From contig BQFW01000015.1 of assembly GCA_020891255.1 (NCBI GenBank), positions 310,001 through 374,000 on the forward strand: a stretch of 64,000 nt of DNA. The letters are read 5' to 3'. The stretch is from Entomortierella parvispora E1425 (lineage: Eukaryota > Fungi > Mortierellomycota). Below are positions 949 to 46,670 of this stretch, in pieces; position 1 is the first letter of the stretch; each line of letters begins with the position of its first letter. The position numbers were made by a program, and so were the translations under genes. The notes beneath the pieces were generated by a model that saw nothing but the letters and a program-made list of their open reading frames with translations, was not told the DNA's origin and searched no databases.

Positions 949-3900
949 TCAAAAGCCCAGAACGGACATGATACCATATCCAATTGTTACGACGCAGAGA
1001 GTGGCCATGATCGACAATGGGACACCGCTCTTCAAGAAGTCCATCGTCTTTAGGTACGGTTGACCCATTTCGTCTTCTTGTGCAACTGCGTTCATATTTG
1101 GAAAGCCCGAGACTGGCAATCCCATGGCGGCTGAGCAGACTAGCCCCGTGCCCATGACCAAGATTCTGGGGTGAGGATCGGCAAACGACATTCCAACTTG
1201 CTGTACAATTGGCAGGATGATCACAGCGGCGACAGTATGGGAGACAAAAGTAGCAAAGACCAAGGTCAGCGCACTAAAGATGATCAGGACCAGCCACATG
1301 GACATGCCGCTGACAGCGCCCTGAATCTGATGGGCAATGGTGTCCAACAAGCCCGAGGAATTCACGGCGCCTCCAAGAGCGATTCCACCCATTGCCAACA
1401 TAATGACGGTCCACAAGAAGTTGTTGAAGTCCTCCTTGTTCAATAGCCCGGTACCGAAGAACGCAACGAGAGGCAGGATGGCAATCACACCCATATTTCC
1501 GAATTGAGCCTGGAACGTATTTTCGATACACCAGAGAATGATGGTTCCAACTGTCACGACACAGATAAAGACCTGGGCCATCGTAATTGGTTCCTTGGCT
1601 GCACGAATTTGGGGGATCGTGGGCGTGTCGCGCTGTGGACGCCAAAGAAGCATGAGCCATGCCCAGATGATCAGATCTATGACTATACAAAGTGGAATCG
1701 AGACTGCGAACCAATTGCCCCAGGAAGGCGCGGGGTTCATGTTCTGGATCGTGATGATGTTTTGTGGCGAGGAGATAGGAGAAGCCATACCGCCGACGTT
1801 GGAGGCGAGAGCGATGCCCATGATCAGACTCGGTGCAAAAGCCGATTTGTGTGGGAGCGTGCGGAGGATAGACTGATTCGAGAATGAAGAGACAAAGTTA
1901 GAGGTGCTTCTTATCATGCTTTAAAGAAGGCAATGTAAAAAAAAAAAAAAAGGAAACACACGGTACCTGGATCAGAGAGAAGCAAAGGACGGGTGCAGCG
2001 ACATTACTGATGAACATGGACGCGACTGTGGCTACAAACATGTTGGCGAGCAAGACCCACTTTGGATCCGTTCCAGCCTTACTCAGAACCGAACTGGCGA
2101 TCGATTTGGCGATACCATATTTTGACAGTGCAGATGCGATCGTAAATCCGCCGAGGAGCAACATGATCGTAGGCGAGAACATGGATGCAAAGACCGCCGT
2201 TGTCGCGTCTGCGGTGGACAGCGTCGCATTTGTAACCGGATCTCTCATAACTTGACACAAGACTGTCAACAATGGCACAAGAAGAGCCGTTGCGTATAAA
2301 GGGAAGACTTCAGTCGCCCAAAAGTATGCAACCGTGATCAGGATGGCAAAGCACCGATTTTGCTCCCTTGTATCAAAAATCTGGACTGACATCAAGACAG
2401 CAAACAGCCCACATCCAATCAACCCCAGCAACAAGTGCCTCGCATTTTTTGCTGTGATGAACCGGATCGGGTATCCAAATAGGATCCATGGCTCTTGTTC
2501 CTTGGGATCAATGGCCCTTGCTCCTTCCGCTTTTCGTTCTTGTCCAACCATGTCTCGCCAAATGGTGTTTCGCTCCCAAACAATGTACTCTCTCAGATGA
2601 GAGCGCAGTTCTTTGGCTGCTTGGGACATGTTCCCTTTGGTACATGTCCTGGCGTAAATGGCCTGGAGCCTCAGGATCTGATCATCTAGCTGTTTCCTGG
2701 ACTCTGATTGAAAAGGAGGGGCCACGTCGACGACCGTGGACATGTAGGTGTTCAGTGTGTGGCTTCTTGCAAGCTTGTCATGCTTCTTGACAATCTTTTG
2801 GAAGCCGAGGTAGTTCAAGGCCACGTAGGACTTGAGCTCTGAAAGGAGCACAAAGGTGTCAATCAAGCGACGACGCAGGAGGGCTTCGGTCGTGAGTGGG
2901 CCATAGACCGATGGCTTTTGGTTAGGATTTTCACGAATGTTGGTGCCGGCGACCATTTCTCTGACGGCTGAGAAGGACCGACGAGGGTCCAACATGAGGG
3001 ATGACTTGCGCCTGTGGTGTTGTGACTGACTACGCTTCAGATCAGTTGTGGCCGACTGTGGATGCAGGTTGTCGAGGCTTTGGTGACGGGATCCTGGACG
3101 GTAGGTAGAGGTTTGGTCATAGTGGACTTCGCTTTGACTATGCAAAACAACATTGTCACCCGTTTCCCCCATTTGAGGATTCTCAAAAGGATGAACCAAC
3201 TCTGCGCTGGACCTCTTCTTCTTCTTCTTCTTCTTCTTCTCGCCCTTCTCCTCATCGTCGGACTCGATCATGTTTTCGCGTCGCCAAATGATCTCTGTCA
3301 GGTCGCCAGCAGAACTCTGTCGTCCATGCAATCGAGTTCCGTGCTCGCTGCCGTCGACATCTGAGAAAACAATTGAGGTTCGGGGCACCTTCACGCTCGA
3401 AACACCGTCGCCTTGGTGGACACTATCACCGCCTACTGTTGAACCGTTGACAGTTGTAGGTCTTGCACCATCGTCTGCAAGGCTGCGTACATTCTCGGAG
3501 CTGCCGTTCATGTCAATGACAGTGTCGGCCTCGTGATCAACCAGTCCATCGCGATCCCACCCCATCATCCTCTTCAACTGCTTCTGCTCCACGTTTGTAA
3601 AATGTCGCTCGTCATCAATGTTCATGCTCTTGCGTCTCTCCATCTCAACAGCAGGGACCAGTGATCCCTGTTCGCCTCGTTCTTGTTGTTGTTTGATCTC
3701 TTCCAGCTGCCACTGACGATCGATCGCATCGAGTTCAGCATAAATCTCTCTTTCCTTCCTAGTGTAGAAGGCCGTGATCTTGCTCAACTCTTTGGCCAAT
3801 CCCTGTTCAAAAGCCGCACTCTCAGGAGGGAAGATGGCGTTGTGGCCCATACCTCCTTCAAGGGCTTCTTGGGCTGCCCTGGCGACCGCGGATTCTTTCT

Positions 3901-4407
3901 TGTGCTTGCCTCTTAAGCCCAGGAATGCACCAAAACCACCGCCGGCACCTGGAGTAGGGGGTTGCTTTTCATTCTCGGTCACGGTAGTGGAAGAAAAACC
4001 GGAGATAAAGCCCTTTTCGGCGTCTGAGGGCCGCGGTGTAGTGGGCGTGATGCCATCAATGGCGTTTTGGACCTGGTACTTCTCGATGGCATAGAGAGTT
4101 TTCTTGAGATTCGTATAGGCGATATATTCGTTGGCCCAGTCAGGGACTATTAATTGAAACAGAAGGGAGAGAAACAGAAGGAACAGAAAGATGTGGGGTT
4201 AGATCCCTTGGGTTAACCAAAGATGTTTGCAGCAGTGACACCACTGTAGATCACAGAGTCCATGACTCTTCGAAGGAGTGTGCATGTCAATTCTTTTTTT
4301 TTTGGGGGGGGGGGTTGTTTGGGGAGGTCTGTTGCGCAATTCCCCTTGCGGCATGCTATAGTTGTTTTACCTGCGTTAAATTGCAAACTGTGGCTGAACT
4401 TGACCAT
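949..4407 (-). CDS. SPX-domain low-affinity phosphate transporter (Pho87/Pho90/Pho91 family, SLC13/DASS-type membrane domain), about 1046 aa
   Basis: Exons 4407-4371, 4146-1967 and 1872-949 with GT-AG introns, frame-consistent. The N-terminus MVKFSHSLQFNAVPDWANEYIAYTNLKK is an SPX start, and LKSYVALNYLGFQKIVKKHDK is an SPX C-terminal motif. Membrane repeats include FISNVAAPVLCFS and GLPVSGFPNMNA. Confidence 0.93.
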
Positions 4408-5050: not shown

Positions 5051-6754
5051 ATGGGCAACACACTCCAAAAGCTCTCGGGCTCGCCTGGCGCGAGCTTCTC
5101 CGCCTCTTCTCAGTCCTCAAAGATGGCTATCGTTGCAGCCATCGCGTCAATTACGACTGCCGCCATGATTCTCGGATACCAAGGCTCGCAGCGGAAACAA
5201 CGCGTTCGTCATCTGAAGGGCATGGCTCCACCTCCTGCCCGCAGCCCCCATACACACGGAGTCGGAATGAACAGAGGTGGCGACTCTGGCAAACCAGATC
5301 TTGACTCGGAGCAAAGACAACAACTGTATCAGGAACAACAAGCCCAAAACGACAAGCCCATGCCCTTTGATGAAGAGCTGATTCAGGAGCAATTGGCTCG
5401 CAACATCGCGTTCCTGGGAGAGGAAGGTGTCGACAAGTTGCGCAAGTCTTTCGTCATCATCGTTGGAGCGGGTGGAGTTGGAAGCTGGGCTGCCAGCATG
5501 CTGATCAAGAGTGGAGTGGGCAAGGTCAGGATTATTGACTTTGATCAATTGGAGCTCTCAGAGTTGAACCAGCATGCAACGGCGAGCAGAGCAGATATTG
5601 GAATCCCCAAGGCTGTCGCCATGAAGAATGCGTTCAAAAAGATTGCACCGTGGGCCCAGGTTGAGGCCCGAGTCGAGCGGCTACAGGAGGACTCGGCAGA
5701 GTTTCTACTTTCCGGTATGTTTCATTCGAGAAATTGATCGCCATACATTTCTATGACGAGGATCAAAAAAAAAACTAATCTTTTGAAATTGCTATTCCAA
5801 TTCAAGGTAATCCCGACTATGTTGTGGACGCCATCGGGGATTTGACCTCAAAGGTGGCATTGCTCAAGTACTGCTATGACAACAAGATTCCAGTGATGAG
5901 CTCATTGAGCGCAGGAGCCAAGGCAGATCCTTCCAGGGTTCAAATTAGCGATATCTCGGAAACCTTTGGTAATTGGTCTTTCGTTTTGTTCGTCCATTGC
6001 ATTATGGATTGACTATTTGCTAATCTCCTTACCACATTTGCTTCCGATAGAGGACCCTCTTGCTAGAGCTGTACGTCGTCGACTTCGAAAGGCTGGTATT
6101 GATACAGGAATTGATGTGGTCTTCTCTACAGAGAAGCCCTACAGGGCTCAGGACCGTGGATCAGGATCATCTCAGCAAGGAAACGGTGACAGCGACGATG
6201 ACGATCAGGAGGTCTTTACTCCTCTTCCCAACTTCAAAAGAGGCTCTGGATCATTGCCTGTCTTAGTCCCCCTTCCAGCCATGTTTGGTATGAGCATGGC
6301 AACCTATATCACCTGCAAGATTGCAGGATGGGCATTGGAACCTTTGCCCATCAAGTTCCGGGAAGCTTTATACCAGCGGCTGCACAGGGATTTAAAGCTG
6401 CAGGAAGAAAGTCTTTATGGATCAGGCCCCCTTCAAATAGGAACTACGACTACATCAAGCCAGGTTGACGACAAAGACTTCCCATTGGACAGACGGGATA
6501 TCGGCTACCTTGTCGAAGAGATGTTCCGGGGCAAGAGTGCAGTATCCAAGAGCATGGATCGGATTGTGGTCTGCCGGTGGAAGAACTCTGAACCTTTGAG
6601 TCTACTGAATGCAGTCGTATTGACACAGCAGGAGATGGAGAAGCATATTTCGTTGCCAGTGGGTACGGATCTTGTGTCCGTCTATGGCAAGGACGTTGTA
6701 GACTATGTTGACGCACAGTTCGATGAGGAGCAGCAAATCTCCCGCCTGCGGTGA
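5051..6754 (+). CDS. ThiF/E1-like tRNA threonylcarbamoyladenosine dehydratase-like protein (TcdA/Tcd1/Tcd2 family), about 509 aa, with N-terminal membrane anchor
   Basis: Exons 5051-5714, 5807-5968 and 6051-6754. Motifs: EELIQEQLARNIAFLGEEG, GAGGVGSW, IIDFDQ, SSLSAGAKADPSRVQISDISETFEDPLARAVRRRLRK, VVFSTEKP, PAMFG. Hydrophobic segment MAIVAAIASITTAAMILGY. Confidence 0.88.
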
Positions 6755-6856: not shown

Positions 6857-7984
6857 TTGCATCTCTCAAATCCGAACATGGAGCAGGAATGGCAATCGCT
6901 GGACTATGGTCATGGAGAGGAGGAGGACGATGATGACATGACCCTCGTCGACAGTGATTCAGATTTTGAGAACCAGCAAGCCGTGTCTCTCACGTCAAAC
7001 ACACACCAAACTCTTGGCCTAGTTGACCTAGGCTCCGCGTCCTCCTGGTCCGACACCTCTTTTTCCTCTTCCTCCTCTTCCTCGTCGTCTTTGACAGCCT
7101 CGTCTTTCTCAGCGCCTCCTACCGTGGAGTCTAACCTCAGAAAGCGTAAACAGCGTTCAGGGGATTGGGAAGAACTGGGTCAGTCCACTCATTACAGTCT
7201 AGAAGAAACCGAAGAGCAATACTTGGTTCAATCTTCTCGGAGAGACGCGCGTAACAAAGAAGCATACAGGGATCGTCCGAGGCGAGCCGACGAGCGATTC
7301 GAGGAGATGAGGAGCCAAGCAGAGGAGCAAAGCGAGGAACTGCTGAGGCGAGCGCAAGAACGACGTGATGTACGTTTGAGGCAGGCTGAAGAACAACGCC
7401 ACGAACGCCTAAAGCGGGCTAAAGAGCTACGCGACAAGCAGTCGAGGCGAGCAGAGGAGGCACGCTATAGATTGGCGAGGCGAGACGAAGAGAGACGTCT
7501 TGAGCAGGCCAGGCGAGCTGAGGAGATACGCTTCGAATTGGCTGGGCGAGCTGATGAGAGGCGCCTTGAATTGGCAAGACGAGCTGAGGATACACGCCTC
7601 GAATGGGAGAGGCGAGCTGAGGAGAGACGTTGCGAGCTCGAGTGGCAATCTGAGGAGAACGGCCGCGAAATTTTGAGGCAAGCTGAGAAAAGGCGTCTTG
7701 AACTGTTGAAGCAAGCCAAAGAGAGACACAAGGAACTGAAGCTATCTTCTGGGGGACATGTTCAGCAAGTCGAGGAATTGCAGCAGGAGTTCCTACGACA
7801 GAGCTGGGAAATAGAACGACTACAGAGGTCACACGCACTGCATCAGACAGGCTTCAGGCCAGCTTGGTGGTTACAGCAAGAACGTTTAAGGCAGGCTGAA
7901 AGACAGCGTCATGAACATTCGAAGAGGATTCTAAAAGTAGGACAACTTTCAAGTCGGACCGATCGACATGTGCGACATACATAA
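6857..7984 (+). CDS. Hypothetical 375-aa protein: acidic/Ser-rich N-terminus, then an E/R-rich helical region with 11-aa repeats
   Basis: Intronless ORF. The repeat RRAEERRLELA occurs in variants. AATAAA-like 3' context is not clear and there is no recognisable domain. Confidence 0.6.
   Translation: MHLSNPNMEQEWQSLDYGHGEEEDDDDMTLVDSDSDFENQQAVSLTSNTHQTLGLVDLGSASSWSDTSFSSSSSSSSSLTASSFSAPPTVESNLRKRKQRSGDWEELGQSTHYSLEETEEQYLVQSSRRDARNKEAYRDRPRRADERFEEMRSQAEEQSEELLRRAQERRDVRLRQAEEQRHERLKRAKELRDKQSRRAEEARYRLARRDEERRLEQARRAEEIRFELAGRADERRLELARRAEDTRLEWERRAEERRCELEWQSEENGREILRQAEKRRLELLKQAKERHKELKLSSGGHVQQVEELQQEFLRQSWEIERLQRSHALHQTGFRPAWWLQQERLRQAERQRHEHSKRILKVGQLSSRTDRHVRHT
7444..7641 (+). repeat. 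Coding 33-bp tandem repeat, about 6 clear units plus degenerate flanking units
   Basis: Units such as gaggcgagcagaggaggcacgctatagattggc / caggcgagctgaggagatacgcttcgaattggc / tgggcgagctgatgagaggcgccttgaattggc. Confidence 0.85.
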
Positions 7985-8285: not shown

Positions 8286-11020
8286 TTAAGCGATGGTGAC
8301 GGGCTTCATCTTGAAGATCTCAAAGTCCTTGGGGTACTCGCCCTTGGAGAACTTGTGTTGCTGGGCAAAGACGACAGTGTAAGTGCCAGCGGGGACGGTG
8401 ATGGCAGGTGCGGTGGCGTTCTGGGTGGTCTGGACCTGACCGTTCCAGATGTACTCGTTCAAGACGGGGTTGCCGTTCTCATCGGCCAAGGGCTGACGGC
8501 CAGACTCGCCAAAGGAAATGTATCCAACAAGCTTGTCCTTGCTGTCGAGAACACGGACCTCGGCGTTGGGGGTGTGGGAACCGAAGCGAGAGATGAAGGC
8601 AGGGAAGTTCTTGACCAAGTCATAGGTGTAAGGGTTGGCAGGGGCATCGTCAATGATGGAGGTAGCGTTGGCCAGGGCAGCCTGAGGGAAGCCATGGTCG
8701 GTATCCATGATGGGGACCTTGCGGATGTCGCCCTTGACACCAGTGTAAGGAACGTGAACAGCGACGGCGCCCTTGGTCTTGGGGGTGGCAACGACGAAAC
8801 CAGAGTACATGGGGAACAAGGTGTTGGTCTTGGGCTCTTTGAAGTGAAGGGTGATCTTGGCAGACTTGCCACCGGGGATCTTGACCTTCTCCTGGGAGAA
8901 GGTAACAGAGGCAGAGGTAGCCTCGATGACGGGGTTAGCCAAGGGCCAGGTGTTGTTGCCCTGATAGGAGATGAGACCATCGGCGGGGACGTTCTTGAGA
9001 GTGAAGGTCTCGGTGTGCTTGCCAGTGTTCTTCAAGGTGATCTGAACGGTCTTGTGGAAGTTGACAGAGTCCAAGAGGTCAATGTGGTCAGGGGTGATCG
9101 AGGCCTCGGCCAAGACAGCGTTAAGAACGTTGACCAAACCAGCACCCTGCTTGGCAGCAGAGGTGAAAGTCTTGGACTTGTAGTTCTTGGAGATGGTAGC
9201 GGTGTTCTTCAATGCCTGGCGGATAACATCACCGTGGGGCTTGGCATGCTTGGCCTGCATGTACAAGGCGTGGGAACCAGTAATATAGGGGGTGGCCATG
9301 GAGGTACCAGACATCAAGGTGTAACCACCGAGGGCAAGAGGGTAGGTCGACAAGATGTTTCCACCGGGAGCTCCGATATCGGGCTTGGAGCGGAGATCAC
9401 CGTCCAAACCGAAGGATGAGAAATCAGAAGGGGCGCCAGAGTTGTCAATGATGAAGGGACCCTGATCCTTGGACCAGGAAACAGCATTCTTCTTGTTCTT
9501 GGCATAGGTAGCCAACATGGTCATACCATCAGCATTCGAGATAGAGGCCATGGGCAAACCAGCAACACCTCCCAAGGAATCGATTCCAGCGTCGTCGGAG
9601 ACAACGATCATACCGGTGGCACCGGCGTTCTGGGCGTTGGCACCACGTCCGCCAGACTTGCAGTTAGTAACATCACCAAGAGCAACGACAATCTTGTTCT
9701 TGAGGCTGCCGACGGCAGTGTACTGAGCAGGGTCACATCCGTCCAAAAGGCTACCCTTGGCGTCCAAAAGAGGAACAATGGGCAAAGTGTTGGGAAGGGT
9801 GATAGGCTTGGCATAGGCCTCAGAAACCGAGAAAGGCATCTTGACACCTCCATAGGTGATGTAGTTGTAGTAGTCGTACATGTTGTCGAAAGAGGCGACA
9901 GATGTGGCATGGTCACCGAGACCAGTGTCGGAGACCATCCAGACACCGTTGGCACCGTCGTTACCGGCAGCGCCGGACAAGGCCATACCCTTGGAGATCA
10001 AGGTCTCGGCCAAGGCAGCGGTCGGGTTGTCCTTGTAGGCAGATCCTCCTCCAAGGGACATGTTGATGATCTAAGGGGGTAGGGTCACACAGCAAAAATT
10101 ATCAGATTTGGATATTTGTGGCCATGATCCGTTGGGATGACCTATCAGGCGAAATGAAGGGGCGAGAGCAATTGGACCATGTGAAGAAAAGGTGATAGAG
10201 GCGCGAGACTTACATCCATGCCGTCGTTGAAGGCCAGCTCCATAGCAGCGAGAATAACATCCTCACCAGAGCCACCAGTGCAGCCAAAGATACGGTAAGC
10301 ACCATAGGTGACCTCGGGGGCGACACCAACAAAGGGCTGTGGGGGCTTGGGGTTGACCTTGATGTCCAAGGCATTACCACCAATGATACCGGCAACGTGA
10401 GAGCCGTGACCTGCGCAATCCATGGGATCACCATCGGGCTTGGGGGTGTTGCCACCGTTGTAAGCATCACCGACAAAGTCCCAACCGTGGGCGATACGGC
10501 AGTTCTTTCCGTTGCGGGCAAAGCATCCCTTGGTGGCACCCTTGGCAGCGAAGGCAGGGTGGTTGTAATCAATACCGGTATCAATGACACCGACCTTGAC
10601 ACCCTTGCCGGTCAACTTGTACTTCTCGTGAAGGACATCGACACCGGTCATGTGGTGGTCCGAGATGGCAAGAGGATCGGTCTTCTTAGCAGTGACCTTC
10701 TGGGTCTTGGGCATGTCGTAGATCGAAACGTGCCAGACGTTCTTGACACCAGGAACACTGGCCAAGGCGTGTCCGTCGTGCTCAGAGTTAACAGTGATGG
10801 AGGCACCGTTGAAAATCTTGTACTCGTTGCGGACCTTGTAGTCAACAGCGTGGGTCTTGAGACCGTTGTGGGCATCAGCGTGGCTGACTCCCTCATGGTA
10901 CTCAATGATATAGGCATTGGGGACAATGTTGGTCTTGCCGTGCTTAACCTGGTGGAACTTGCCAGCAGACACCAAAGAGGCCGCAGCGAGGATCGAGAGG
11001 ATAGTGGAGGTGATCTTCAT
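8286..11020 (-). CDS. Secreted S8A subtilase copy A (signal peptide, I9-like prodomain, S8 catalytic domain with PA insertion, Fn3-like/DUF1034 domain; Vpr/Pr1C-like), about 863 aa
   Basis: Exons 11020-10214 and 10070-8286; phase-0 intron 10213-10071 between AFNDGMD and IINMSLG. Triad motifs VIDTGID, HGSHVAG and SGTSMATP; oxyanion motif AAGNDG; KPDIGAPGG; QGAGLVNV. Confidence 0.95.
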
Positions 11021-11159
11021 TGTGATATATGAGATTTGTGAAGGAGGGTCTGTTAAGACGTGTGAGGGAGATGAGTGGGGGGAGGGAGTGAAGTGAGGAA
11101 GGGACGGGAGGAAGGGAAGGAGAGAAGAGCGAGGAGGGTGGAGGTAGGGGATGTCAGAA

Positions 11160-11213
11160 GAGTCTTGGGATGGCTGAAGAGAAAAAGAAAAAGGGGAGGA
11201 AGGAGTATTTATA
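11160..11213 (-). promoter_or_regulatory. Core promoter of subtilase A: TATAAATA plus downstream pyrimidine tract and CAGCCATCCCAAGACTC motif
   Basis: TATAAATA at 11213-11206 and motif at 11176-11160. The same arrangement is seen upstream of all five subtilases. Confidence 0.6.
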
Positions 11214-12388
11214 TTCTACAGGGGCGACTGGATGCTATCGCTGGCGCAGCGTAGCGTCGTTTTTTGATCATGGCCTGGGTTAGAAATGACTCTCCACCAG
11301 CAGGACCGAGGGTTCACACGCGATGAATATGTGGATACGCCCCAAACCCAAGGGAACATGAGCTGGCAAGGGAACACAGAGCAAATTGTATCTGACCAAT
11401 GCAATTGCACGAAAAATACGCTCAAGGGAAACGAGACCTTTATCCAATCTTGTTCCTGAATTGGAACTCGGGTGTCCGCCAGACCTGCCCCTGAAGCTCA
11501 CATAGGGTGCGATGGTCCCGTAAAAAGCAAAAGGAGGGAAAAGATGACCGATACCATCGGCTGTGTGGCGTCGATGTTGATGGGTGCTGCGAAGCTCCCT
11601 GGCTGTTCATTTCAATTGCACTCACTATTGAAATCGGATAAACTGTCCGCGGCGATGGGAACAAGAGGTTGCTGTGAAGTGTGAGAAAGTGAAAGGAAAA
11701 CAGCAAGATAGATAGCAAGGCTCAACTGTCCACTGTTGCGTATGTATTGTATTGACTTTGGGTCGAGACCGCCGTCCCAGTGGTGAACCCTATCTTCGAA
11801 ATCCCAACAATGCTGAGAGCAGCGATCAATTGAAGACCAAAGAATGCAAGACCTCTTGAGAGCCGATTCTTTGAGAGCACCGACTGGAGGTGAATGGCGA
11901 CAGTTGCGCATGTGGACTACAAAAGCAGCAGGCCAATGAGGTCCAGCTGAACAGAGTTACAGAGGCAAACAGAGAAAGACAAAGGCTCTCATCGATGCTC
12001 GGTTAAAACATGCACATCATGCACGAAACGGGCAAGCACCGTTTGGCCCGAGGAGGGCGAAAACTTGTCCTCCGTTTGCTGCAGGGAACACAAAATAATT
12101 AAATCGCAACGAAAGACTGGCCGAGAGTTGTTGTTTGTCCGTGGGCCATCCAACGGTCTTGTTGCTTGCTCCCCCCCTGTTCTTCTCTCCCCATCTCCTT
12201 TTTGGGGTGAGTGTTATTCGTTTGTTTGGGCCAGTCTTCGTTCGCAGGAACCGCCTCCGAGCTTTCTTGACAACCTTGACCGGTGTCCACAAGAGAGCTC
12301 GCTGGGTGAACTGTGCCTGCATTGTTATCACACTCCAGGTGCTTGGGGAATGACAATTTTCCCTTGGAATCATAGTTGGTGGGCCGAG

Positions 12389-12451
12389 GATAAATACTCT
12401 TGACCTTCCCATGGTTGACCAGTTTCTTTTCTCTTCAGCCATTCAGGACTC
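12389..12451 (+). promoter_or_regulatory. Core promoter of subtilase B: GATAAATA plus CAGCCATTCAGGACTC motif
   Basis: GATAAATA (TATA variant) at 12389-12396 and motif at 12436-12451. Confidence 0.55.
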
Positions 12452-12581
12452 TTTACATCAGCACCTCTCCCACCGCCCTCACACCCTCACACCCTCGTTC
12501 CCGCCCTCCTCTCCCTACGCGCCCCCTCACAGTCTTCTACAGACCCCTTTCTCCCGCCTCCATCAAAACTAGACCTTCACC

Positions 12582-15313
12582 ATGAAGATCACCACCATTC
12601 TCTCGGCCCTTGTCGCCGCAACCCTGGTCTCTGCTGGAAAGTTCCACCAGGTCAAGACTGGAAAGACCAACATTCTGCCTAACGCGTTCATCATCGAGTA
12701 TGAGAAGGGCGTTACCCACGCCGACGCTCACACGGGTCTCCACAGCCACGCTGTCGATTACAAGGTCCGCAACGAGTACAACATCTTCAACGGTGCTTCC
12801 ATCACCGTTAACTCCGGTCATGACGGACATGCATTGGCCAAGATTCCCGGTGTCAAGAATGTCTGGCACGTCTCCCTGTACTCGGCACCCAAGACTGAGA
12901 AGGTCACTGCTAAGAAGACCGATCCTCTTGCTACCTCGGACCACCATATGACCGGTGTCGATGTCCTTCAGGAGAAGTACAAGTTGACCGGTAAGGGTAT
13001 CAAGATCGGTGTCATTGATACCGGTATTGATTACAACCACCCTGCCTTCGCTGCCAAGGGTGCCACCAAGGGATGCTTTGCCCGCAACGGAAAGAACTGC
13101 CGTATCGCCCACGGTTGGGACTTTGTTGGTGATGCCTACACTGGATACAACACCCCTGTCCCTGGTGATGATCCCATGGATTGCTTCGGACACGGAACCC
13201 ACGTTGCCGGTATCATTGGTGGTAATGCCATGGACATCAAGGTCAACCCCAAGCCCCCACGACCCTTTATTGGTGTCGCTCCCGAGGTCACCTACGGTGC
13301 TTACCGTATCTTTGGATGCAACGGTAGCTCTGGTGAAGATGTTATTCTTGCTGCTATGGAGCTGGCCTTCAACGATGGCATGGATGTAAGTCTCGCGCCT
13401 CTATCACCTTTTCTTCACATGGTCCAATTGCTCTCGCCCCTTCATTTCGCCTGATAGGTCATCCCAACGGATCATGGCCACAAATATCCAAATCTGATAA
13501 TTTTTGCTGTGTGACCCTACCCCCTTAGATCATCAACATGTCCCTTGGAGGAGGATCTGCCTACAAGGACAACCCGACCGCTGCCTTGGCCGAGACCTTG
13601 ATCGCCAAGGGTATGGCCTTGTCCGGCGCTGCCGGTAACGACGGTGCCTCTGGTATCTGGATGGTCTCTGACACTGGTCTCGGTGACCATGCCACCTCTG
13701 TCGCCTCTTTCGACAACATGTACGACTACTACAACTACATCACCTATGGAGGTGTCAAGATGCCCTTCACTGTTTCTGAGGCCTATGCCAAGCCTATCAC
13801 CCTTCCCAACACTTTGCCCATTGTTCCTCTTTTGGATGCCAAGGGTAACCTTTTGGACGGATGTGACCCTGCTCAGTACACTGCCGTCGGCAGCCTCAAG
13901 AACAAGATTGTTGTTGCTCTCGGTGATATCACTCGCTGCCTGTCTGGTGGACGTGGTGCCAACGCCCAGAAGGCTGGCGCCACCGGTATGATCATCGTCT
14001 CTGACGATGTTGGAATCGATTCCTTGGGAGGTGTTGCTGGTTTGCCCATGGCCTCTATCTCGAATGCTGATGGTATGACCATGTTGGCCACCTACGCCAA
14101 GAACAAGAAGGACGCTGTTTCCTGGTCCAAGGATCAGGGTCCCTTCATCATTGACAACTCTGGTGCTCCCTCTAGTTTCTCATCCTTCGGTTTGGACGGT
14201 GATCTCCGCTCCAAGCCCGATATCGGAGCTCCCGGTGGAAACATCTTGTCGACCTACCCTCTTGCCCTCGGTGGTTACACTTTGATGTCTGGTACCTCCA
14301 TGGCCACCCCCTACATTGCTGGTTCCCACGCTTTGTACATGCAAGCTAAGCACGCCAAGCCCCTCGGCGGTGCCATCCGCCTGGCCTTGAAGAACACTGC
14401 CACCATCTCCAAGAACTGGCAGTCCAAGACCTTCACCTCTGCCGCCAAACAGGGTGCTGGTTTGGTCAACGTTCTTAACGCTGTCTTGGCCGAAGCCTCG
14501 ATTACCCCTGACCACATTGACCTCTTGGACTCTATCAACTTCCAAAAGACTGTTCACATCACCTTGAAGAATATTGGCAAGCACACCGAGACCTACACTC
14601 TCAAGAACGTTCCCGCTGACGGCCTTATCTCTTACTTGGGCAACAACACCTGGCCCTTGGGTACTCCTGAGATCGAGGCTACCTCTGCCTCTGTTACCTT
14701 CTCCCAGGAGAAGGTCAAGATCCCCGGTGGCAAGTCTGCCAAGATCACCCTTCACTTCAAAGAGCCCAAGACCAACTCCTTGTTCCCCATGTACTCTGGC
14801 TTCGTCGTTGCCACCCCCAAGACCAAGGGCGCCGTTGCCGTCCATGTTCCTTACATTGGTATGAAGGGTGATGTCCGCAAGGTTCCAATCATGGATACCG
14901 ACCACGGCTTCCCCCAGACCGCCCTTGCCAACTCCACTACCGTCCTTGGAAGTGCCCCTGCCAACCCTTACACCTACGATTTGGTCAACAACTTCCCCGC
15001 CTTCATCTCTCGCTTCGGTTCCCACACCCCCAACGCCGAGGTCCGTGTTCTCGACAGCAAGAAGAAGTTTGTTGGATACATTTCCTTTGGCGAGTCTGGC
15101 CGTCAGCCTTTGACTGATGAGAACGGCAACCCCGTCTTGAACGAGTACATCTGGAACGGTCAGGTCCAGACCATCCAAAACGCCACTGCTCCTGCCATCA
15201 CCGTTCCCGCTGGCACCTACACTATTGTCTTTGCCCAGCAACACAAGTTCTCCAAGGGCGAGTACCCCAAGGACTTTGAGATCTTCACCATGGACCCCGT
15301 TACCATTGCTTAA
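12582..15313 (+). CDS. Secreted S8A subtilase copy B, about 862 aa
   Basis: Exons 12582-13385 and 13529-15313. Motifs DTGID, HGTHVAG and GTSMATP intact; same intron position as A. Confidence 0.95.
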
Positions 15314-15987: not shown

Positions 15988-16053
15988 TATAAATACCCCA
16001 CCACGTCTTCTTTTCTACCTTTTTTTTTCTGTTTCTTCAGCCATCCAGGACTC
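15988..16053 (+). promoter_or_regulatory. Core promoter of subtilase C: TATAAATA plus CAGCCATCCAGGACTC motif
   Basis: TATAAATA at 15988-15995 and motif at 16038-16053. Confidence 0.6.
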
Positions 16054-16190: not shown

Positions 16191-18886
16191 ATGAAGATCA
16201 CCTCCACCATCCTCTCTATCCTCGCTGCGGCCTCTTTGGTCTCTGCTGGCAAATTCCACCAGGTTAAGCCCGGCAAGACCAACATTGTTCCCAACGCCTA
16301 CATCATTGAGTACCACGAGGGATTCACCCATGCTGATGCCCACAACGGTCTCAAGACCCACGCTGTTGACTACAAGGTCCGCAATGAGTACAAGATTTTC
16401 AACGGTGCCTCCATCACCGTTCACTCTGAGCACGATGGACATGCTTTGGCTAACGTCCCTGGTGTGAAGAACGTCTGGCACGTCTCAGTCTACGACATGC
16501 CCAAGTCGCAGAAGGTCACTGCCAAGGCCACTGACCCAGCATCCATTTCTGATCACCACATGACCGGAGTGAATGTCCTTCATGACAAGTACAAGCTGAC
16601 CGGTAAGGGTATCAAGGTCGGTGTCATTGATACCGGTATTGATTACAACCACCCTGCCTTTGCGGCCAAGGGGGCCAACAAGGGCTGCTTTGCTCGCTAT
16701 GGTAAGAACTGCCGTATCGCCCACGGTTGGGACTTTGTCGGTGATGATTACAACGGTGGTAACACTCCCAAGGCTGACGCCGATCCCATGGATTGCGCTG
16801 GTCACGGTTCCCACGTCGCTGGTATCATTGGTGGCAATGCCTTGGACATCAAGGTCTCGCCCAAGCCCCCACAGCCCTTTGTTGGTGTCGCCCCCGAGGT
16901 CACCTTCGGAGCCTACCGTATCTTTGGATGCAAGGGTGGTACTGGAGACGATGTTATTCTTGCTGCCATGGAGCTGGCCTTCAACGACGGCATGGATGTA
17001 AGTGGTCGCGTTTTTTTTCCCATCTGTCCCTGAAGATTTTTCTTTTTTCCATGTTTCCTCGCATGCTAATAGTCGCTTTTCTCTGATCACAACCATAGGT
17101 CATCAACATGTCTCTCGGTGGCGGCTCTGCTTATAAGGAAAACCCCACTGCCGCCTTGGCCGAGACTCTGATCGCCCGCGGTATGTCGTTGGCTGCTGCC
17201 GCCGGTAATGACGGTGCCAACGGTGTCTGGATGGTCTCTGACTCTGGTCTCGGTGACCATGCTACTTCTGTTGCCTCGTTCGATAACCTGTATGTCTGGT
17301 ACCAAACTCTCGGCTACGGTGGCAAGCAGATGCCTTTCTCTGTTTCGGACACGTGGGGAAAGCAGATCCACCTGGACAACACCCTCCCCTTGGTACCCCT
17401 GTTGGACAAGTCTGGCAAGATCCTTGATGGATGCGACCCTGCCCAATACACCGCCAACGGTTCAGTCAAGGGAAAGATTGTCGTTGCTCTCGGTGATGTC
17501 ACTCGCTGCAAGTCTGGTGGACGTGGTGCCAACGCCCAGAAAGCCGGTGCTGCCGCTATGGTCGTCATCTCTGACGATGCCGGTATTGACGCCTTGGGTG
17601 GTGTTCCTGGTTTGCCTATGGCCTCTATCTCGAATGCTGATGGTTTGGCCCTTTTGGCTGCATACGCCAAGAACCCCAAGGCACCCGTCACTTGGTCCAA
17701 GGAGCAAATCCCTGTCCAGATTGACAACGCTGGAGCACCTTCTGGCTACTCTTCGTTCGGTTTGGACGGCGATCTCCGCTCCAAGCCCGACGTCGGAGCT
17801 CCCGGTGGAAACATCTTGTCTACCTACCCTCTTGCCCTTGGCGGTTACACCGTCATGTCTGGAACCTCCATGGCCACTCCTTATATTGCTGGTTCTCATG
17901 CTTTGTACATGCAAGCCAAACATGCCAAGCTCAATGGCGCTGTCGTTCGTCAGGCTTTCAAGAACACCGCTACCATCTCCAAGAACTACAAGTCGAAAAC
18001 TTTCACCTCTGCTGCCAAGCAGGGTGCTGGTTTGGTTAACGTTCTTAACGCCGTCTTGGCCGAGGCCTCGATCACTCCTGACCACATTGACCTCTTGGAC
18101 TCTGTCAACTTCCACAAGACCGTTCAGATCACCTTGAAGAACACTGGCAAGCACACCGAGACCTTCACTCTCAAGAACGTCCCCGCCGATGGTCTCATCT
18201 CCTACCAGGGCAACAACACCTGGCCCTTGGCTAACCCCGTCATCGAGGCTACCTCTGCCTCTGTCACCTTCTCGCAGAACAAGGTCAAGATCCCCGGTGG
18301 CAAGTCTGCCAAGATCACCCTTCACTTCAAAGAGCCCAAGACCAAGTCCTTGTTTCCCATGTACTCTGGCTTCGTCGTTGCCACCCCCAAGACCAAGGGC
18401 GCCGTCGCTGTTCACGTCCCTTACACTGGTATCAAGGGTGACATCCGCAAGGTCCCTATCATGGATACCGACCACGGTTTCCCCATGGCGTTCTTGGCTG
18501 ACAACAACGGTCAGCTCTCGGATGTCCCCAAGGGTGCTTTCACCTATGACCTCGTCAAATCTTTCCCTGCCTACGCCGCACGCTTTGGCTCCCACACCCC
18601 TAATGCCGAGATCCGTGTCCACAACGCCAAGGATGATTCCTTGGTTGGCTTCTTGAACTGGGGCCCCAACGGCCGTATGCCCTTGGCGGACGAGGACGGT
18701 AACCCCGTCTTGATCCAGTTCCCATGGAACGGAAAGGTTCAAGCTTCCATGAACGCCACTGCACCTTCGGTCACTGTCCCCGCTGGCACCTACACTGTCG
18801 TCTTTGCCCAGCAGCACAAGTTCTCCAAGGGCGTGTACCCCCACGACTTTGAGATCTTCAAGATGAAGCCCGTTACTATCGCCTAA
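16191..18886 (+). CDS. Secreted S8A subtilase copy C, about 864 aa
   Basis: Exons 16191-16997 and 17099-18886; intron 16998-17098. Catalytic triad motifs intact. Confidence 0.95.
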
Positions 18887-19202: not shown

Positions 19203-21934
19203 TTAAACAATGGTGATAGTGCCAACCTCGTAGACCTCATAGTCAGCGGGGAAGCTTCCCTTGGTGAACTTGCGCTGGGCAGCCACATCCAAGGTGTAGA
19301 CACCGGCGGGGACGACGGTGGGGGTCAAGGTCAAGTCCTCGTTGGCATAGACGGTACCATCCCAGACCCAAAGAGAGTTGGCCTTCTCACCAGTGTCCTC
19401 GTCAATGTTGGAGTCACGTCCACGGTAACCGAAACCGGCACCGAGGTTGATGGTGTTGATGAAACCGACAAACTTGTGCTTGGCATCCCGAACACGGATC
19501 GTAAAGTCGGGCGAGTGGGATCCAATACGGGTCACGATCGTAGGGAGGTACTTGTTGAGGTCAAACTTGAAGTTCTTGGGGAGATTGTACAAGTCGCCGC
19601 TCTCAATCTCGTACACAGCGGGGAAGGGAGTGTTCTCGGTGTCGATAATGGGGACCTTGGAGATGTCACCCTTGACACCGACGTAGGGAACATGGACAGC
19701 AACACCGTTCTTAGACTTGGGGGTAGCAACCACAAAGCCAGAGTAGATGGGCCACTGGGAAGCCTTGCCCTTGGAAGGCTCGGTGAAGTGAACGCTCACC
19801 TTGACAGTCTTGCCAGCAGCAATCTTGACAGTCTTGGAAGAGAAAGAGACCCCGGCATAGTCGGCCTCAATGACGGGGATAGGGTTAGGGAAGGAGTTGT
19901 TCGAGCTGTACGAGTTGTAGGCATCAGCGGTCTCATGGGAGAGAGTATAAGTCTCGGTGTGTTTACCCTCGTTCTTGATCGAGATGGTGGCCTTCTTGAT
20001 GAAGTGCCTGGTATCCAAGAGATCAATGTGGTCGGGGGTAATGGAGGTTGTAGTCGTGATGGCGTTCAAGACGTTGATCAAACCAGCACCCTGCTTGGCA
20101 GCAGAGGTGAAGGTCTTGGAGCCGTAGTTCTTGGAGATGGTGGCGGTGTTCTTGAAGACCTTGCGGATTACATCACCATGGGGCTTGGCGTGCTTAGCCT
20201 GCATGTACAAAGCGTGAGCACCAGCGACGTAGGGGGTAGCCATGGAGGTACCCGACATCAAGGTGTAGCCACCGAGGGCAAGAGGGTAGGTTGACAAGAT
20301 GTTTCCACCGGGAGCACCGAGATCGGGCTTGGAGCGGAGCTCACCGTCAATACCTATAGAGGAGAAGTCAGAAGGAGCTCCACCACCCTCGACGGCAAAG
20401 AGGGCCTCACCCTTGTTCCAGGTAAAGGTAGCCTTGGGGTTCTTCTTGTAGGTGGCAAGGAGGTCCAAACCAGCCTGGAACTCGATGGAGCCCATAGGGA
20501 CACCAGCGAGACCTCCAATGGCAGCAATACCGAAAGGAGTGGTCTGGATCAAGATGGCTCCAGCACCGGCATCCTTGGCGACGCCAGCACGTCCACCAGA
20601 CTTGCAGCGAGTGACATCACCGAGGACAAGGACGACCTTGCCCTTGACATTCACGCCAGCGTAGCGGGCGGGGTCGCATCCGTCAGAGAGGGAGCCATCC
20701 TTCTCGTAGATGGGGACCAAGGTCGCGGAGGCTGGGACAGCGGGCGACGCAATGGGCTTGCCATAAGCATCAGCAATTCCGTATGGGTGGGCAATCTTGT
20801 CACCGTAGGTGAAAGAGTTGTAGCTGACATACTGGTTATCGAAGGAGGCAACTGAGGTGGCCTTGTCGCCGAGACCGGTGTCAGAGACCATCCACACGCC
20901 CTCAGAACCATCGTTACCAGCAGCACCAGCCAAGGCCATACCGCGAGAAATGAGCTTCTCGGCCAAGACGGCAGTGGGGTTGTACTTGTAGGCAGAGCCA
21001 CCACCGAGGGACATGTTGATGATCTAAAAAAAAAATGAGTCAATGGGACATTAGTCAAAAGTGCAAGTGGGCCCGCGCGCGACACATCTGTGCAACATTA
21101 GAGATGGTAGGAAATGATTCTTACATCCATGCCATCGTTGAAGGCTAGCTCCATGGCAGCAAGAATAACATCATCACCAGCGCTACCCTTGCATCCAAAG
21201 ACACGGTAGGCTCCGAAAGTGACCTCGGGGGCGACACCAACAAAGGGCTGTGGGGGCTTGGGCGAGACCTTGATGTCCAAGGCATTGCCACCAATGATAC
21301 CGGCAACGTGAGAGCCGTGACCAGCGCAATCCATGGGATCGCCATCGGGCTTGGGGGTGTTTGAACCAGTGTAGTCATCACCGACAAAGTCCCAGCCGTG
21401 CGCAATACGGCAGTTCTTGCCATAGCGAGCAAAGCAGCCCTTGTTGGCGCCCTTGGCGGCGAAAGCAGGGTGGTTGTAATCAATACCGGTATCAATGACA
21501 CCGACCTTGACACCCTTACCGGTCAACTTGTACTTCTTGTGAACAACATCGACACCAGTCATATGGTGATCAGAGGTCACCTCGGGGTCCGTGGCTTTCT
21601 TCTTGGACTTTTCAGTCTTGGGCAACTCATGCTTGGAGACATGCCAAACATTCTTGACACCGGGGACCTTGGCCAAGGAGGCACCGCCGTGGTTGGACTT
21701 GACGGTCAAGGAGGCACCGTTGAAGATGTTGTACTCTGTGCGGACCTTGTAATCGATCTTGCGAGAGTTGATCGCGTTCTGAATATCCCTGTGGTTCGCA
21801 CCAGTCTCATACTCGATGATGAAGGCGTTGGGGATAATCTGGTGCTCTTTGCCCTCCATGTGCTGGTGGAACTTGCCGGCAGAGACCAAAGAAGCTGCGG
21901 CCAAGGCCGACAGGATGGTAGCAGTGATTTTCAT
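19203..21934 (-). CDS. Secreted S8A subtilase copy D, about 876 aa (more divergent C-terminal domain)
   Basis: Exons 21934-21125 and 21023-19203; intron 21124-21024. Triad motifs intact. Confidence 0.95.
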
Positions 21935-23805: not shown

Positions 23806-26532
23806 TTAAGCAGCAGTCTTGATGGTGACGGTCTTAAGGTCAAAGATCTCGTAGTTCTTGGGGTACTCGTCCTTGGTGAACTTGTACTGGGAGGCGACCT
23901 CGATGCGGTAGGTACCCGAGGGCAAAAGGGTAGGAACGACCTGGGTGGCAGAGGAGACGACTTGACCGACCCAAGGGAAGGACCAGACGTTCTCAGAGCC
24001 GTCCGTGTTGGCCAACTTGTTACGGCCACGGGGTCCAATAGCCGCTTCGCCATCGGAGGCGAGGTAGCCGACAAAGGACTTGTCTGAAGCCTTGTAGACG
24101 CGGATGGTGTAGTTGGGAGTGTGCGAGCCCAACTTGGCAGTGACCTCGAACGAAGGGGTCTTGGGGTTGGTAAAGTCAAGGACTTTGACCTTGGGGTAAG
24201 GGGTAATTTTGGAGACCTCACCCTCCGTGTGGGTGAAGGCGGGCCAGCCGTCCTCAACATCCATGATGGGGATCTTGGACACATCACCCTTCAAACCAGT
24301 GTAAGGCACATGGACGGGGATACCGTTCTTGGAGGTAGGCGTGGCGACAACAAAGCCAGAGTAGATGGGCCAGACCTTGGCGTTGCCCTTCTTGGGCTCC
24401 TCAAAGTGCAAAGTGATCTTGGCAGACTTGCCAGCAGGGATCTTGACCTTCTTCTGGGAAAAGACAACCGAGGCAGAATCCGCCTCGATCTGGGGTGTGG
24501 CCAAGGGGTAGGTGTTGTTGCCGGTGTAGGAAACCAAGGCGCTGGCGGGCAAGTGCGAGAACGAGTAGGTCTCGGACTTCTTGCCAGAGTTCTTGATCGT
24601 GATCTTGACTTTCTTGTTCATGCGGACAGAGTCCAAGAGATCAATGTGATCGGGGGTAATAGAGGAGGTAGTCAAAACAGCGTTCAAGACATTGACAAGA
24701 CCAGAGCCCTGCTTGGCAGCAGAGGTAAGGGTAGAGACACCGATATCCTTGGAGATGGTGGCGGTGTTCTTGAAGGCCTTGCGGATAACGTCTCCATGGG
24801 GCTTGGCATGCTTGGCCTGCATGTACAAAGCATGAGCACCAGCAACATAAGGAGTGGCCATCGAAGTACCCGACAAAACAGCGTACGAACCCTTAGCAGT
24901 AGGGTAGGTCGACAAGATGGCACCGCCAGGGGCTCCAAGATCAGGCTTGGAGCGAAGATCGCCATCCAAACCATAGGAGGAGAAGCCTGAGGGGAATCCA
25001 CCGCCCTCGACCTGGATGCTTTCAACCTTGGTGCTCCAAGTCAGAGTCTGCTTGGAGTCCTTCTTCCAGGCAGCCAAAAGGTCATTACCGGCCTTGTTCT
25101 CAATGGAGGCCATGGGGAAACCAGGGGCACCGCCCAAAGAGGCAATGCCAAAGGGGGTGGTCTGGACGACCATACCAGCTGCCTTGGCACCGACAGCGAC
25201 GGTACCACGTCCACCAGATTTGCAGCGGGTAACATCACCGAGGACAAGGACAATCTTCTTTGTGACATCCAAGCCGGCGTAGCGAGCTGGGTCGCATCCA
25301 TCAGAGAGCGAGCCATCGGCCTCAAAGATAGGCTGGATAGGCATAGCAGGGAGATCGATAACCTTTTTGTAGGCCGAAGCGATTCCGTAAGGGTGCTTGA
25401 CTCCGGCAAACGTGTAGGAAGGCAAGAGCTGGAATGCGTTATCAAATGAAGCCACAGAGCTGGAGAGGTCGCCCAGACCGGTGTCAGAGACCATCCAGAC
25501 ACCATCAGATCCATCATTACCACCAGCAGAAGCCAAGGCCATGCCGCGAGCAATCAATTTGTCACCAAGGACGGCCTCAGGGGCGGTCTTGTAGGCAGAA
25601 CCACCACCGAGAGACATGTTGATGACCTACAGTTGAAAAAGAAAAAAAAAGTCTGTCAGTAAAATGAAGCGGTGCTGAGAACCAGGGACATCGCGTTGAA
25701 CGACGCGCCCTATCAGAAGCCATCTTACATCCATGCCGTCGTTGAAAGCCAACTCCATGGCTTGCATGATGATATCGTTGCCAGTCTCACCATCGCATCC
25801 AAAAACACGGTAGGCACCAAAGGTGACCTCAGGGGCGACACCGACGAAAGCAGCTGGAGGGGCGGGGCCCTGCTTGCCGGGGACGATGTGCAGAGCGTTA
25901 CCACCAATAATACCGGCAACGTGAGTACCATGTCCAAAGCAATCCATGGGGTCCGAGTCAGACTTGGGGGTTGACTTTCCATCGTAATGGTCGCCGACAA
26001 AGTCCCAGCCGTGGGTGACACGGCAGTTCTTGCCGTAACGGGCAAAGCATCCCTTGTCAGCGCCCTTAGCGGCAAAGGCTGGGTGCAAGTAATCGATACC
26101 AGTATCGATGACGCCGACCTTGATACCCTTTCCGGTCAGTTTGTACTTGTCATGAAGGACATCCACGCCAGTCATCTTGTGATCCGAGAGAGGCTCCTTG
26201 TCGGTTTTTTTGTGCTGCTTGACCTTGGGGATGCTGTAACGAGCAATGGGCCAGACATTCTTGACACCAGGCAACTTGGCCAAGTCATTGCCACCGTGCT
26301 CAGAGTTGACAGTGATGGCGGCACCGTTGAAGATGCCGTACTCGGAGCGGACCTTGAAGTCAACCTTGTGGCTTCTCAAAGAGTTTTGGAAATCGCGGTG
26401 GTTGGCGTGATCCTCGTACTCGATAATGTAGCCGCCCGAGACGTGTTCGCGGCCTGCGTTGATGGGATGAACCTTGCCAGCTGAGACCAAGGTCGCTGCG
26501 GCAATGACAGAAAGGATAGCGGTGATCTTCAT
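23806..26532 (-). CDS. Secreted S8A subtilase copy E, about 874 aa (most divergent paralog)
   Basis: Exons 26532-25729 and 25626-23806; intron 25728-25627 at the conserved position. Motifs DTGIDY, HGTHVAG and SGTSMATPYVAG. Confidence 0.95.
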
Positions 26533-46126: not shown

Positions 46127-46670
46127 GGTGCTGGAGGTTTGCATGCATGCAGAGGACCTGACATGACTAGAGGTGTCTCTTTTCAAGAAATGAGCAACGA
46201 AAGATGCACAGGGCACATTGTGGAGATTGGGTGGCTTGTGAGCCTCAACGTTCAAGACCATCACCACAAGATTTCAGTTCGAGAAGGGCGACTCTTGATC
46301 CCTCCTTTCCAGAGCACACACACCACGTTGTTACGATCGGTAACCCATGCTGACGAGCCCCAAAGGACAGTCCGAGAATCAAGCAACCCTCTTTTCCTTG
46401 CGCGCGAGAACCGGGCTCTTGCCGATCACTTTCTTTCTTTGCCGTTCCAACAAGCCGACTCGATCACTTTCCCACTCACCCCCACATACCCCACTTACCC
46501 ACACGGCCTCTCCCTCTCTCTCGTTTCTTTGCCCCGATCCTCTTATCAGCTGACAGGTCCCCTCTGCCGGACGTCCAGACGGGCTGACTCGATCCCTTTC
46601 TTCGCTTCCTTCTTTTCCTCTATTATTCTTGGCCACAATCCATTCCCTCCGCCCTTGTTATACAACAACC

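Follow-up and report, generated by a model that had tools for sequence, protein, structure and literature searches.

Within 64 kb of contig BQFW01000015.1 (positions 310,001 to 374,000), the genome of the fungus Entomortierella parvispora E1425 carries a cluster of five paralogous secreted-subtilase genes, named here A to E. We analysed this whole 64,000-nt stretch, hereafter the window, in whose positions all coordinates are given unless stated otherwise. Two of the genes, A and B, stand head to head and share, in inverted orientation, 227 identical nucleotides that include an entire intron. We conclude, with a probability of about 0.85, that this identity results from recent interlocus gene conversion, through homologous recombination, in a cluster whose protease genes swap patches of sequence. 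Of the many patches that make up this family-wide mosaic, the identical tract is the youngest. Gene conversion between paralogs is recognized by exact runs that go beyond their background divergence, by segments with incongruent affinities, and by neutral sites that are homogenized between diverged flanks; all of these are observed here.

An identical tract in two diverged genes

The two genes and the tract that they have in common are laid out as follows.

8286-11020, minus strand: subtilase A (EMPS_10767)
10214..11020, minus strand: A exon 1, with signal peptide, prodomain, Asp147 and His205; C-like over its first ~225-300 nt
10071..10213, minus strand: A intron, 143 nt, GT..AG, same sequence as the B intron
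8286..10070, minus strand: A exon 2, with the remaining S8 domain and Ser526, PA insert, Fn3-like domain and C-terminal region (domains assigned from the Pfam matches on the B counterpart)
9996..10222, minus strand: exact tract, A copy, 227 nt
12582-15313, plus strand: subtilase B (EMPS_10768)
12582..13385, plus strand: B exon 1, with signal peptide, prodomain, Asp146 and His204
13386..13528, plus strand: B intron, 143 nt, GT..AG, its splicing supported by an RNA contig joint
13529..15313, plus strand: B exon 2, with the C-terminal half of the S8 domain and Ser525, PA domain and Fn3-like domain
13377..13603, plus strand: exact tract, B copy, 227 nt

The translations of the gene models A, B, C, and D match the deposited proteins exactly, and all five paralogs consist of two exons, with the intron at the same codon boundary. 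Pfam recognizes PF00082 (Peptidase_S8), PF02225 (PA), and PF06280 (fn3_5) on B, whose catalytic motifs DTG, HG[TS]H, and GTSM stand at residues 146, 204, and 525. Judging from these sequence features, A to E belong to the class of S8 subtilases with a PA insert and an Fn3-like domain. The intron splits the catalytic residues, i.e., Asp and His are encoded by exon 1, and Ser, together with the PA and Fn3-like domains, by exon 2.

Three sets of sequencing runs were compared with the window in the form of k=31 contigs, which break at the tract and cannot bridge 227 nt: same-strain (E1425) Illumina-derived DNA contigs (X1); RNA contigs (X2), evidently from a library of the same sample as X1; and contigs of a second strain (X3). 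In the RNA contigs, position 13385 is joined to position 13529, skipping 143 nt bordered by GT..AG, and exon 1 of A and exon 1 of B are both spanned, at similar depth. Thus, the intron is genuine and both genes are transcribed.

The sequence from 13377 to 13603 on the plus strand is the reverse complement of that from 9996 to 10222 at 227 of 227 bases, as the original prediction, made on this DNA from its letters, had stated. The tract comprises all 143 nt of the intron, preceded by 9 nt from exon 1 and followed by 75 nt from exon 2, and it stops on either side at the nearest A/B mismatch. When one mismatch at 13604 is allowed, near-identity reaches 13648 (272 nt). At this very position, the same-strain DNA contig has T, the letter of A, where the assembly of B has G; either a single-nucleotide polymorphism (SNP) bubble was popped by the contig builder, or the true tract is 272 nt long (13377-13648) and the assembly is one base off the reads.

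The A and B arms (8286-11007 and 12592-15313) can be aligned without any gap over 2722 nt, from 10 nt past the ATG through the stop codon, with 249 mismatches (91% identity). Their homology does not go beyond the start and stop codons, and the sequences that flank the two genes on the 5' and the 3' side are unrelated save for a short promoter motif. The tract itself is embedded in a 563-nt block that holds 14 A/B mismatches, and its identity takes in synonymous sites in both adjoining exons. When the 249 mismatches were shuffled in 20000 trials, the longest run obtained was 158 nt, against the 227 nt observed, and under a uniform A/B divergence of ~9% a run of 227 nt has an analytic probability of ~9 × 10−8. 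Even at the lowest local value of synonymous divergence between A and B (dS, substitutions per synonymous site, 0.076), simple arithmetic gives a probability of ~2 × 10−5 that a neutral 143-nt intron stays unchanged. The last exchange must therefore be younger than the 563-nt block that surrounds the tract.

The introns of C, D, and E measure 101, 101, and 102 nt, i.e., the A/B intron is ~40 nt longer, and their similarity to the A/B intron does not rise above that of shuffled sequence, in agreement with the original prediction, which had called them unrelated. No further copy of the A/B intron sequence was found in the 64-kb window. Among relatives, introns cannot be aligned to each other where the exons are still 80-88% identical, which means that the introns of this family evolve fast and, hence, that the identical intron of A and B is not retained ancestry. 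The run statistics and these fast-evolving introns bear out the earlier idea that an identical intron in diverged paralogs betrays very recent conversion or crossover.

A patchwork among paralogs

The exchanges can be followed through the other members of the cluster, which are the following.

16191..18886, plus strand: subtilase C (EMPS_10769), second conversion partner of A
19203..21934, minus strand: subtilase D (EMPS_10770), with an exact 83-nt run in common with C
23806..26532, minus strand: subtilase E, the most diverged paralog

In the codon alignment, the nearest relative of A changes along the gene. A shares 91-94% identity with C and only 75-83% with B in the first ~225 columns; around and past the intron, it is 95-97% identical to B; and in columns 1725-2100, it is 97-99% identical to C. 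Sliding identity accordingly places A nearest to C in columns 0-225 and 1725-2100, and nearest to B elsewhere, including the 3' end. Positions 18077-18204 of C are the exact reverse complement of positions 8965-9092 of A (128 nt), and the 5' end of C, together with the 47 nt that precede its ATG, is 88% like that of A. C in its turn is nearest to D in columns 600-750 (93-96% identity), and the exact run that they share lies at 16821-16903 in C and 21219-21301 in D. The exchange partners found in the window, A-B, A-C, and C-D, are all inverted pairs; the comparisons of paralogs A to E detected no conversion signal involving E.

The synonymous divergence between A and B also varies by segment. 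It amounts to 0.90 in the first 375 nt of exon 1, and to 0.22, 0.076, 0.21, 0.24, and 0.30 in the other segments, a 12-fold span. Exon 1, whose products are 86% identical in A and B, has indeed diverged, as had been claimed. The ratio of nonsynonymous to synonymous divergence (omega) is ~0.2 in all segments, which points to purifying selection throughout. A Sawyer-type permutation of the polymorphic sites gives p=0.007 for A and B, p=0.0005 for A and C, and p=0.0005 for C and D. Moreover, segment-wise maximum-likelihood trees conflict with one another, grouping (A,C) with 94/96, (A,B) with 100/100, (A,C) with 89/91, and (A,B) with 99/98. The C-like 5' end of A and the B-like start of its exon 2 had both been spotted earlier, and they are recovered by sliding identity and by the segment trees. 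The reading of this C-like 5' end as a sign of swapping between A and B does not hold, since it needs a separate A-C exchange and is uninformative on an A/B flip.

Exchange in related fungi

Homologues of this subtilase family number in the hundreds in the Mortierellaceae and are frequently clustered. In Mortierella claussenii (JAABNM010000115.1, here L018), a 344-nt exact direct repeat (312-655 and 10361-10704 of L018) lies in exon 1 of a pair of tandem paralogs with 84-91% identity elsewhere, and this tract is longer than the 227 nt of A and B. The cluster of Haplosporangium sp. Z 27 (L019) is tandem too, and its exact runs are shorter. In the clusters fetched from these two species, every subtilase gene stands in one orientation and no inverted A/B arrangement occurs; the inverted layout of A/B (and of C/D) thus appears to be specific to the Entomortierella lineage. 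The tandem tract of M. claussenii, together with the patches among A to D, makes long exact tracts a trait of this family in the Mortierellaceae, in any gene orientation.

Three peat-metagenome contigs (L001, L002, and L003), from three samples, come from a related species (85-90% identical). They have ~930 nt in common with 0-1 mismatch, in the 3' half of exon 2 (alignment columns 882-1812), and their downstream flanks are C-type in L001, B-type in L002, and A-type in L003. This segment reflects either strong concerted evolution in the relative or assembly through a repeat; one segment joined to three differing flanks is evidence of homogenization in itself. As outgroups for the linkage between exon 1 and exon 2, these three contigs are unsafe, because joins that cross the repeat may be the assembler's choice. 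Another metagenome contig, L017, ends within the intron. Homology of its intron to that of A and B was considered and rejected, the local alignment score being 20 against 16 ± 2.5 for shuffled sequence.

Origin and timing of the exchange

We propose that the clustered paralogs repeatedly swap sequence by non-allelic homologous recombination, which would result in their concerted evolution. At A and B, a heteroduplex or repair-synthesis tract would have begun in conserved coding sequence and then run through the intron, and in this way the intron of one gene, with the adjoining exon ends, would have been copied into the other gene. The exchange was presumably non-reciprocal, i.e., a conversion without crossover, and we infer that it took place after the split from the second strain. 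This strain is ~95-97% identical to E1425 here, and its contigs measure ~300 nt in the region. One of them runs across the place of the tract at single-copy depth (115 vs 105). The B-like contigs end at 13385 and 13530, and one of these holds 118 extra bases unlike the intron of the window. This suggests that the A and B introns differ in the second strain and that the conversion is later than the strain split.

Several points weigh against gene conversion as we describe it. No outgroup copy tells the donor from the recipient, so that non-reciprocity can only be presumed. Moreover, a conversion tract accompanying a crossover, i.e., an inversion, would leave an identical footprint. The cross-strain evidence is indirect, as it comes from one contig at single-copy depth and from B-like contigs that end at the intron borders. 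Lastly, the metagenome contigs of the relatives are possibly mis-joined across the repeat: the existence of their shared segment is safe, its linkage is not.

Alternative explanations

Given the inverted arrangement of A and B, resolution of a crossover within the tract would turn around the 3.15 kb that separates its two copies and give in-frame chimeras. The original prediction had described such a flip, for a segment of ~3.4 kb. Its geometry stands, for Asp and His lie in exon 1, Ser and the PA and Fn3-like domains in exon 2, and the halves would be swapped in frame; its size does not, 3154 nt lying between the copies (10223-13376) and 3608 nt when both copies are included. This potential to flip is a passive by-product of homology, and no dedicated switch.

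The first alternative to conversion is that the inverted arms of A and B underwent a reciprocal crossover, which left both orientations in existence, or that the tract still permits both, which we judge unlikely. In a variant to which we give equally little credit, populations or lineages, or mycelia at low frequency, would hold the promoter-plus-exon-1 segment (3.15 kb) both ways. The flip would proceed by ordinary, unregulated non-allelic homologous recombination and would yield A1-B2 and B1-A2 proteases; such products, too, are improbable. The geometry lends itself to this, with a 2.7-kb inverted repeat, a perfect core of 227 nt (272 nt if one mismatch is allowed), and a junction at the intron that keeps the reading frame. 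However, no second orientation has come to light in any read or strain, and the 409x Nanopore assembly shows a single consensus orientation. With an overall identity of only 91%, moreover, the arms are expected to cross over less, owing to mismatch-repair anti-recombination. Furthermore, the patches shared by A and C, by C and D, and by the tandem genes of M. claussenii require no inversion. A fungal precedent is found in a region of chromosome XIV of Saccharomyces cerevisiae, although this region is reported to be stable on laboratory timescales (PMC9731477).

If both orientations did exist, two loci would give four secreted protease isoforms, either prodomain/Asp-His half being combined with either PA/Ser/Fn3 half. 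The intron would then be a seamless joint, renewed repeatedly by conversion. As a neutral joint for exon shuffling, it would make a modest, tidy source of protease variants.

The original prediction went further than this and saw in A and B an invertible, shufflon-like cassette, i.e., a programmed exon swap that would diversify secreted proteases by a dedicated mechanism. Geometry alone speaks for such a cassette, which we hold to be very improbable. We found no recombinase, integrase, or transposase Pfam domain near the locus, neither in the ten largest open reading frames (ORFs, at least 220 aa) outside the subtilase genes and antisense ORFs nor in the ORFs of the spacer between A and B, a scan that is partial in that exon-split genes may escape an ORF-based search. 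The borders carry no short, site-like repeats; the inverted repeat takes in all of the 2.7-kb coding sequence together with the intron. Each of the two genes is complete and expressed and is preceded by its own promoter, and silent cassettes are absent. The intron has no Rfam match and an unremarkable fold (z = 0.01), and a like tract is found in M. claussenii between tandem paralogs, which are not invertible. The earlier interpretation is thus half right: there was a recent homologous exchange, but the shufflon-like cassette is without support.

The E1425 assembly was produced from Nanopore reads with SMARTdenovo, followed by Nanopolish and Pilon, with 2x150 Illumina reads for polishing (PMC8759367). 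Over-polishing was therefore considered, i.e., Pilon or Nanopolish could have pasted the intron of one paralog onto the other, all the more as 2x150 reads can multi-map among paralogs (PMC8759367). The same-strain de Bruijn contigs argue strongly against this, and such an artefact has next to no probability. They hold a single tract sequence, in a contig with a depth of 122.9, compared with 73.9 in the single-copy spacer (~1.66x); a half-shared contig is expected at ~1.5x single copy, and the observed depth fits a contig of which about half occurs twice. Over 9000-14600 (5.6 kb), the contigs show only 8 variant places, none of them within the tract, and every one of the 8 is a paralog letter (B on A, A on B, or C/D on A). 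In the contig covering 13377-13911, the tract portion is free of variants. A collapse of the A and B introns in the assembly, against which the original prediction had cautioned, was checked in this way and is countered by the lack of tract variants and by the raised depth. The polishing artefact is rejected on this contig evidence.

Scarcely credible, finally, is that purifying selection on an embedded element (a small nucleolar RNA or an enhancer) kept the introns identical: the A/B intron does exceed those of C, D, and E by ~40 nt, but it has no Rfam family match even at E<=1, folds no better than shuffles (z = 0.01), occurs nowhere else in the window, and bears no significant resemblance to introns from relatives, and the identity also takes in synonymous sites of the flanking exons. 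On the same Rfam and fold results, the intron was ruled out as a structured or known RNA. It was likewise ruled out as a mobile "introner", as there is no second copy in 64 kb, the identity enters the exons, and the five paralogs have their introns at the same position.

Surroundings of the cluster

Between the two genes lies the following feature.

11021..12581, no strand: A/B divergent-promoter spacer, 1.56 kb, with A and B head to head

No Pfam-bearing ORF was found in this spacer (11021-12581), and RNA contig depth is 0 across 11244-12365. It contains an exact 16-nt motif, ATGGCTGAAGAGAAAA, at 11170-11185 and, as its reverse complement, at 12427-12442, i.e., ~150 nt ahead of the start codons of the two genes. 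Related copies stand upstream of C (16013-16046) and of D, and also in the metagenome relative L017 (422-463). The motif is probably a promoter element common to the subtilase cluster.

The neighbouring ORFs are of ordinary cellular types: SPX/citrate-transporter-like (1898-3982, minus strand), ThiF-family E1-like (5051-5737, plus strand), F-box (44543-46267, minus strand), beta-lactamase-fold (46629-48209, plus strand), and FAD-binding monooxygenase (55333-56298, plus strand). A Pfam scan of the ORFs neighbouring the subtilase cluster revealed no mobile-element signature. Adjoining gene A, an ORF of 375 aa (6857-7984, plus strand) contains a 33-nt (11-residue) periodic repeat, with six copies within 7339-7916 that are 66-83% identical to the reference copy. 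This ORF has no Pfam match, and its product may be a charged coiled-coil or repeat protein.

Significance and comparison with known systems

On present evidence, the case of A and B is ordinary recombination biology, a new and clean instance of a well-known process, i.e., interlocus conversion in a clustered family. For the Mortierellomycota, a fungal lineage that diverged early, it offers a clean and well-dated case of concerted evolution, in which a secreted-protease cluster diversifies and homogenizes patch by patch. It also calls for caution among annotators and phylogeneticists, as orthology in this subtilase family is scrambled by segment.

The proteins themselves are nothing unusual when compared with subtilases of the pyrolysin, Vpr, and C5a-peptidase type, with which they share the S8A domain, the PA insert, the Fn3-like domain (PF06280), the D/H/S triad, and a signal-like N-terminus.

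The human G-gamma/A-gamma globin pair is the textbook case of conversion, in which the 5' parts, including intron sequence, are identical, and gene conversion has reportedly been surveyed among Caenorhabditis paralogs as well. A and B resemble the globin type in an identity that exceeds background and includes the intron, in mosaic phylogenies, and in a homology confined to the gene bodies between diverged flanks. They differ from it in that the most recent partners are inverted, head to head, and belong to a fungal secreted-subtilase cluster of the Mortierellomycota.

Other known exchanges occur between inverted duplicates. The arms of the human Y-chromosome palindromes are said to undergo gene conversion with each other, and F8 intron-22 inversions recur between inverted int22h copies. 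There, as at A and B, inverted duplicates can exchange within one chromatid, and a crossover flips the intervening DNA. On the other hand, the repeats of these systems range from 9.5 kb to the Mb scale and are >99.9% identical, and F8 inversions destroy the gene, whereas an A/B flip would leave both products intact.

Bacterial shufflons and other invertible cassettes, such as R64 Rci/sfx and the phase-variable hsdS inversions, rely on a dedicated recombinase that is site-specific and on short defined sites, and most of them combine a single expressed locus with silent cassettes. An inversion within the coding regions of A and B would, as in a shufflon, recombine N- and C-terminal gene parts; in contrast to shufflons, the scanned ORFs and the contigs of the A/B locus show no recombinase, short sites, or silent cassettes.

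The closest real precedent is the flip/flop region of S. cerevisiae chromosome XIV, which spans 24 kb and is flanked by a homogenized 4-kb inverted repeat that consists of pairs of paralogous genes (Salzberg et al. 2022, PMC9731477). In that account, the continual homogenization of the inverted-repeat gene pairs leads to repeated re-inversion, on an evolutionary and not a laboratory timescale (PMC9731477). The yeast repeat is described there as almost identical over 4 kb, with both orientations documented, whereas the A/B arms are 91% identical around a 227-nt perfect core, the 3.15-kb segment would cut the genes at the intron, and one orientation is seen. What the two systems share is a set of fungal paralogs that conversion maintains as a homogenized inverted repeat, through which inversion is possible without a dedicated recombinase.

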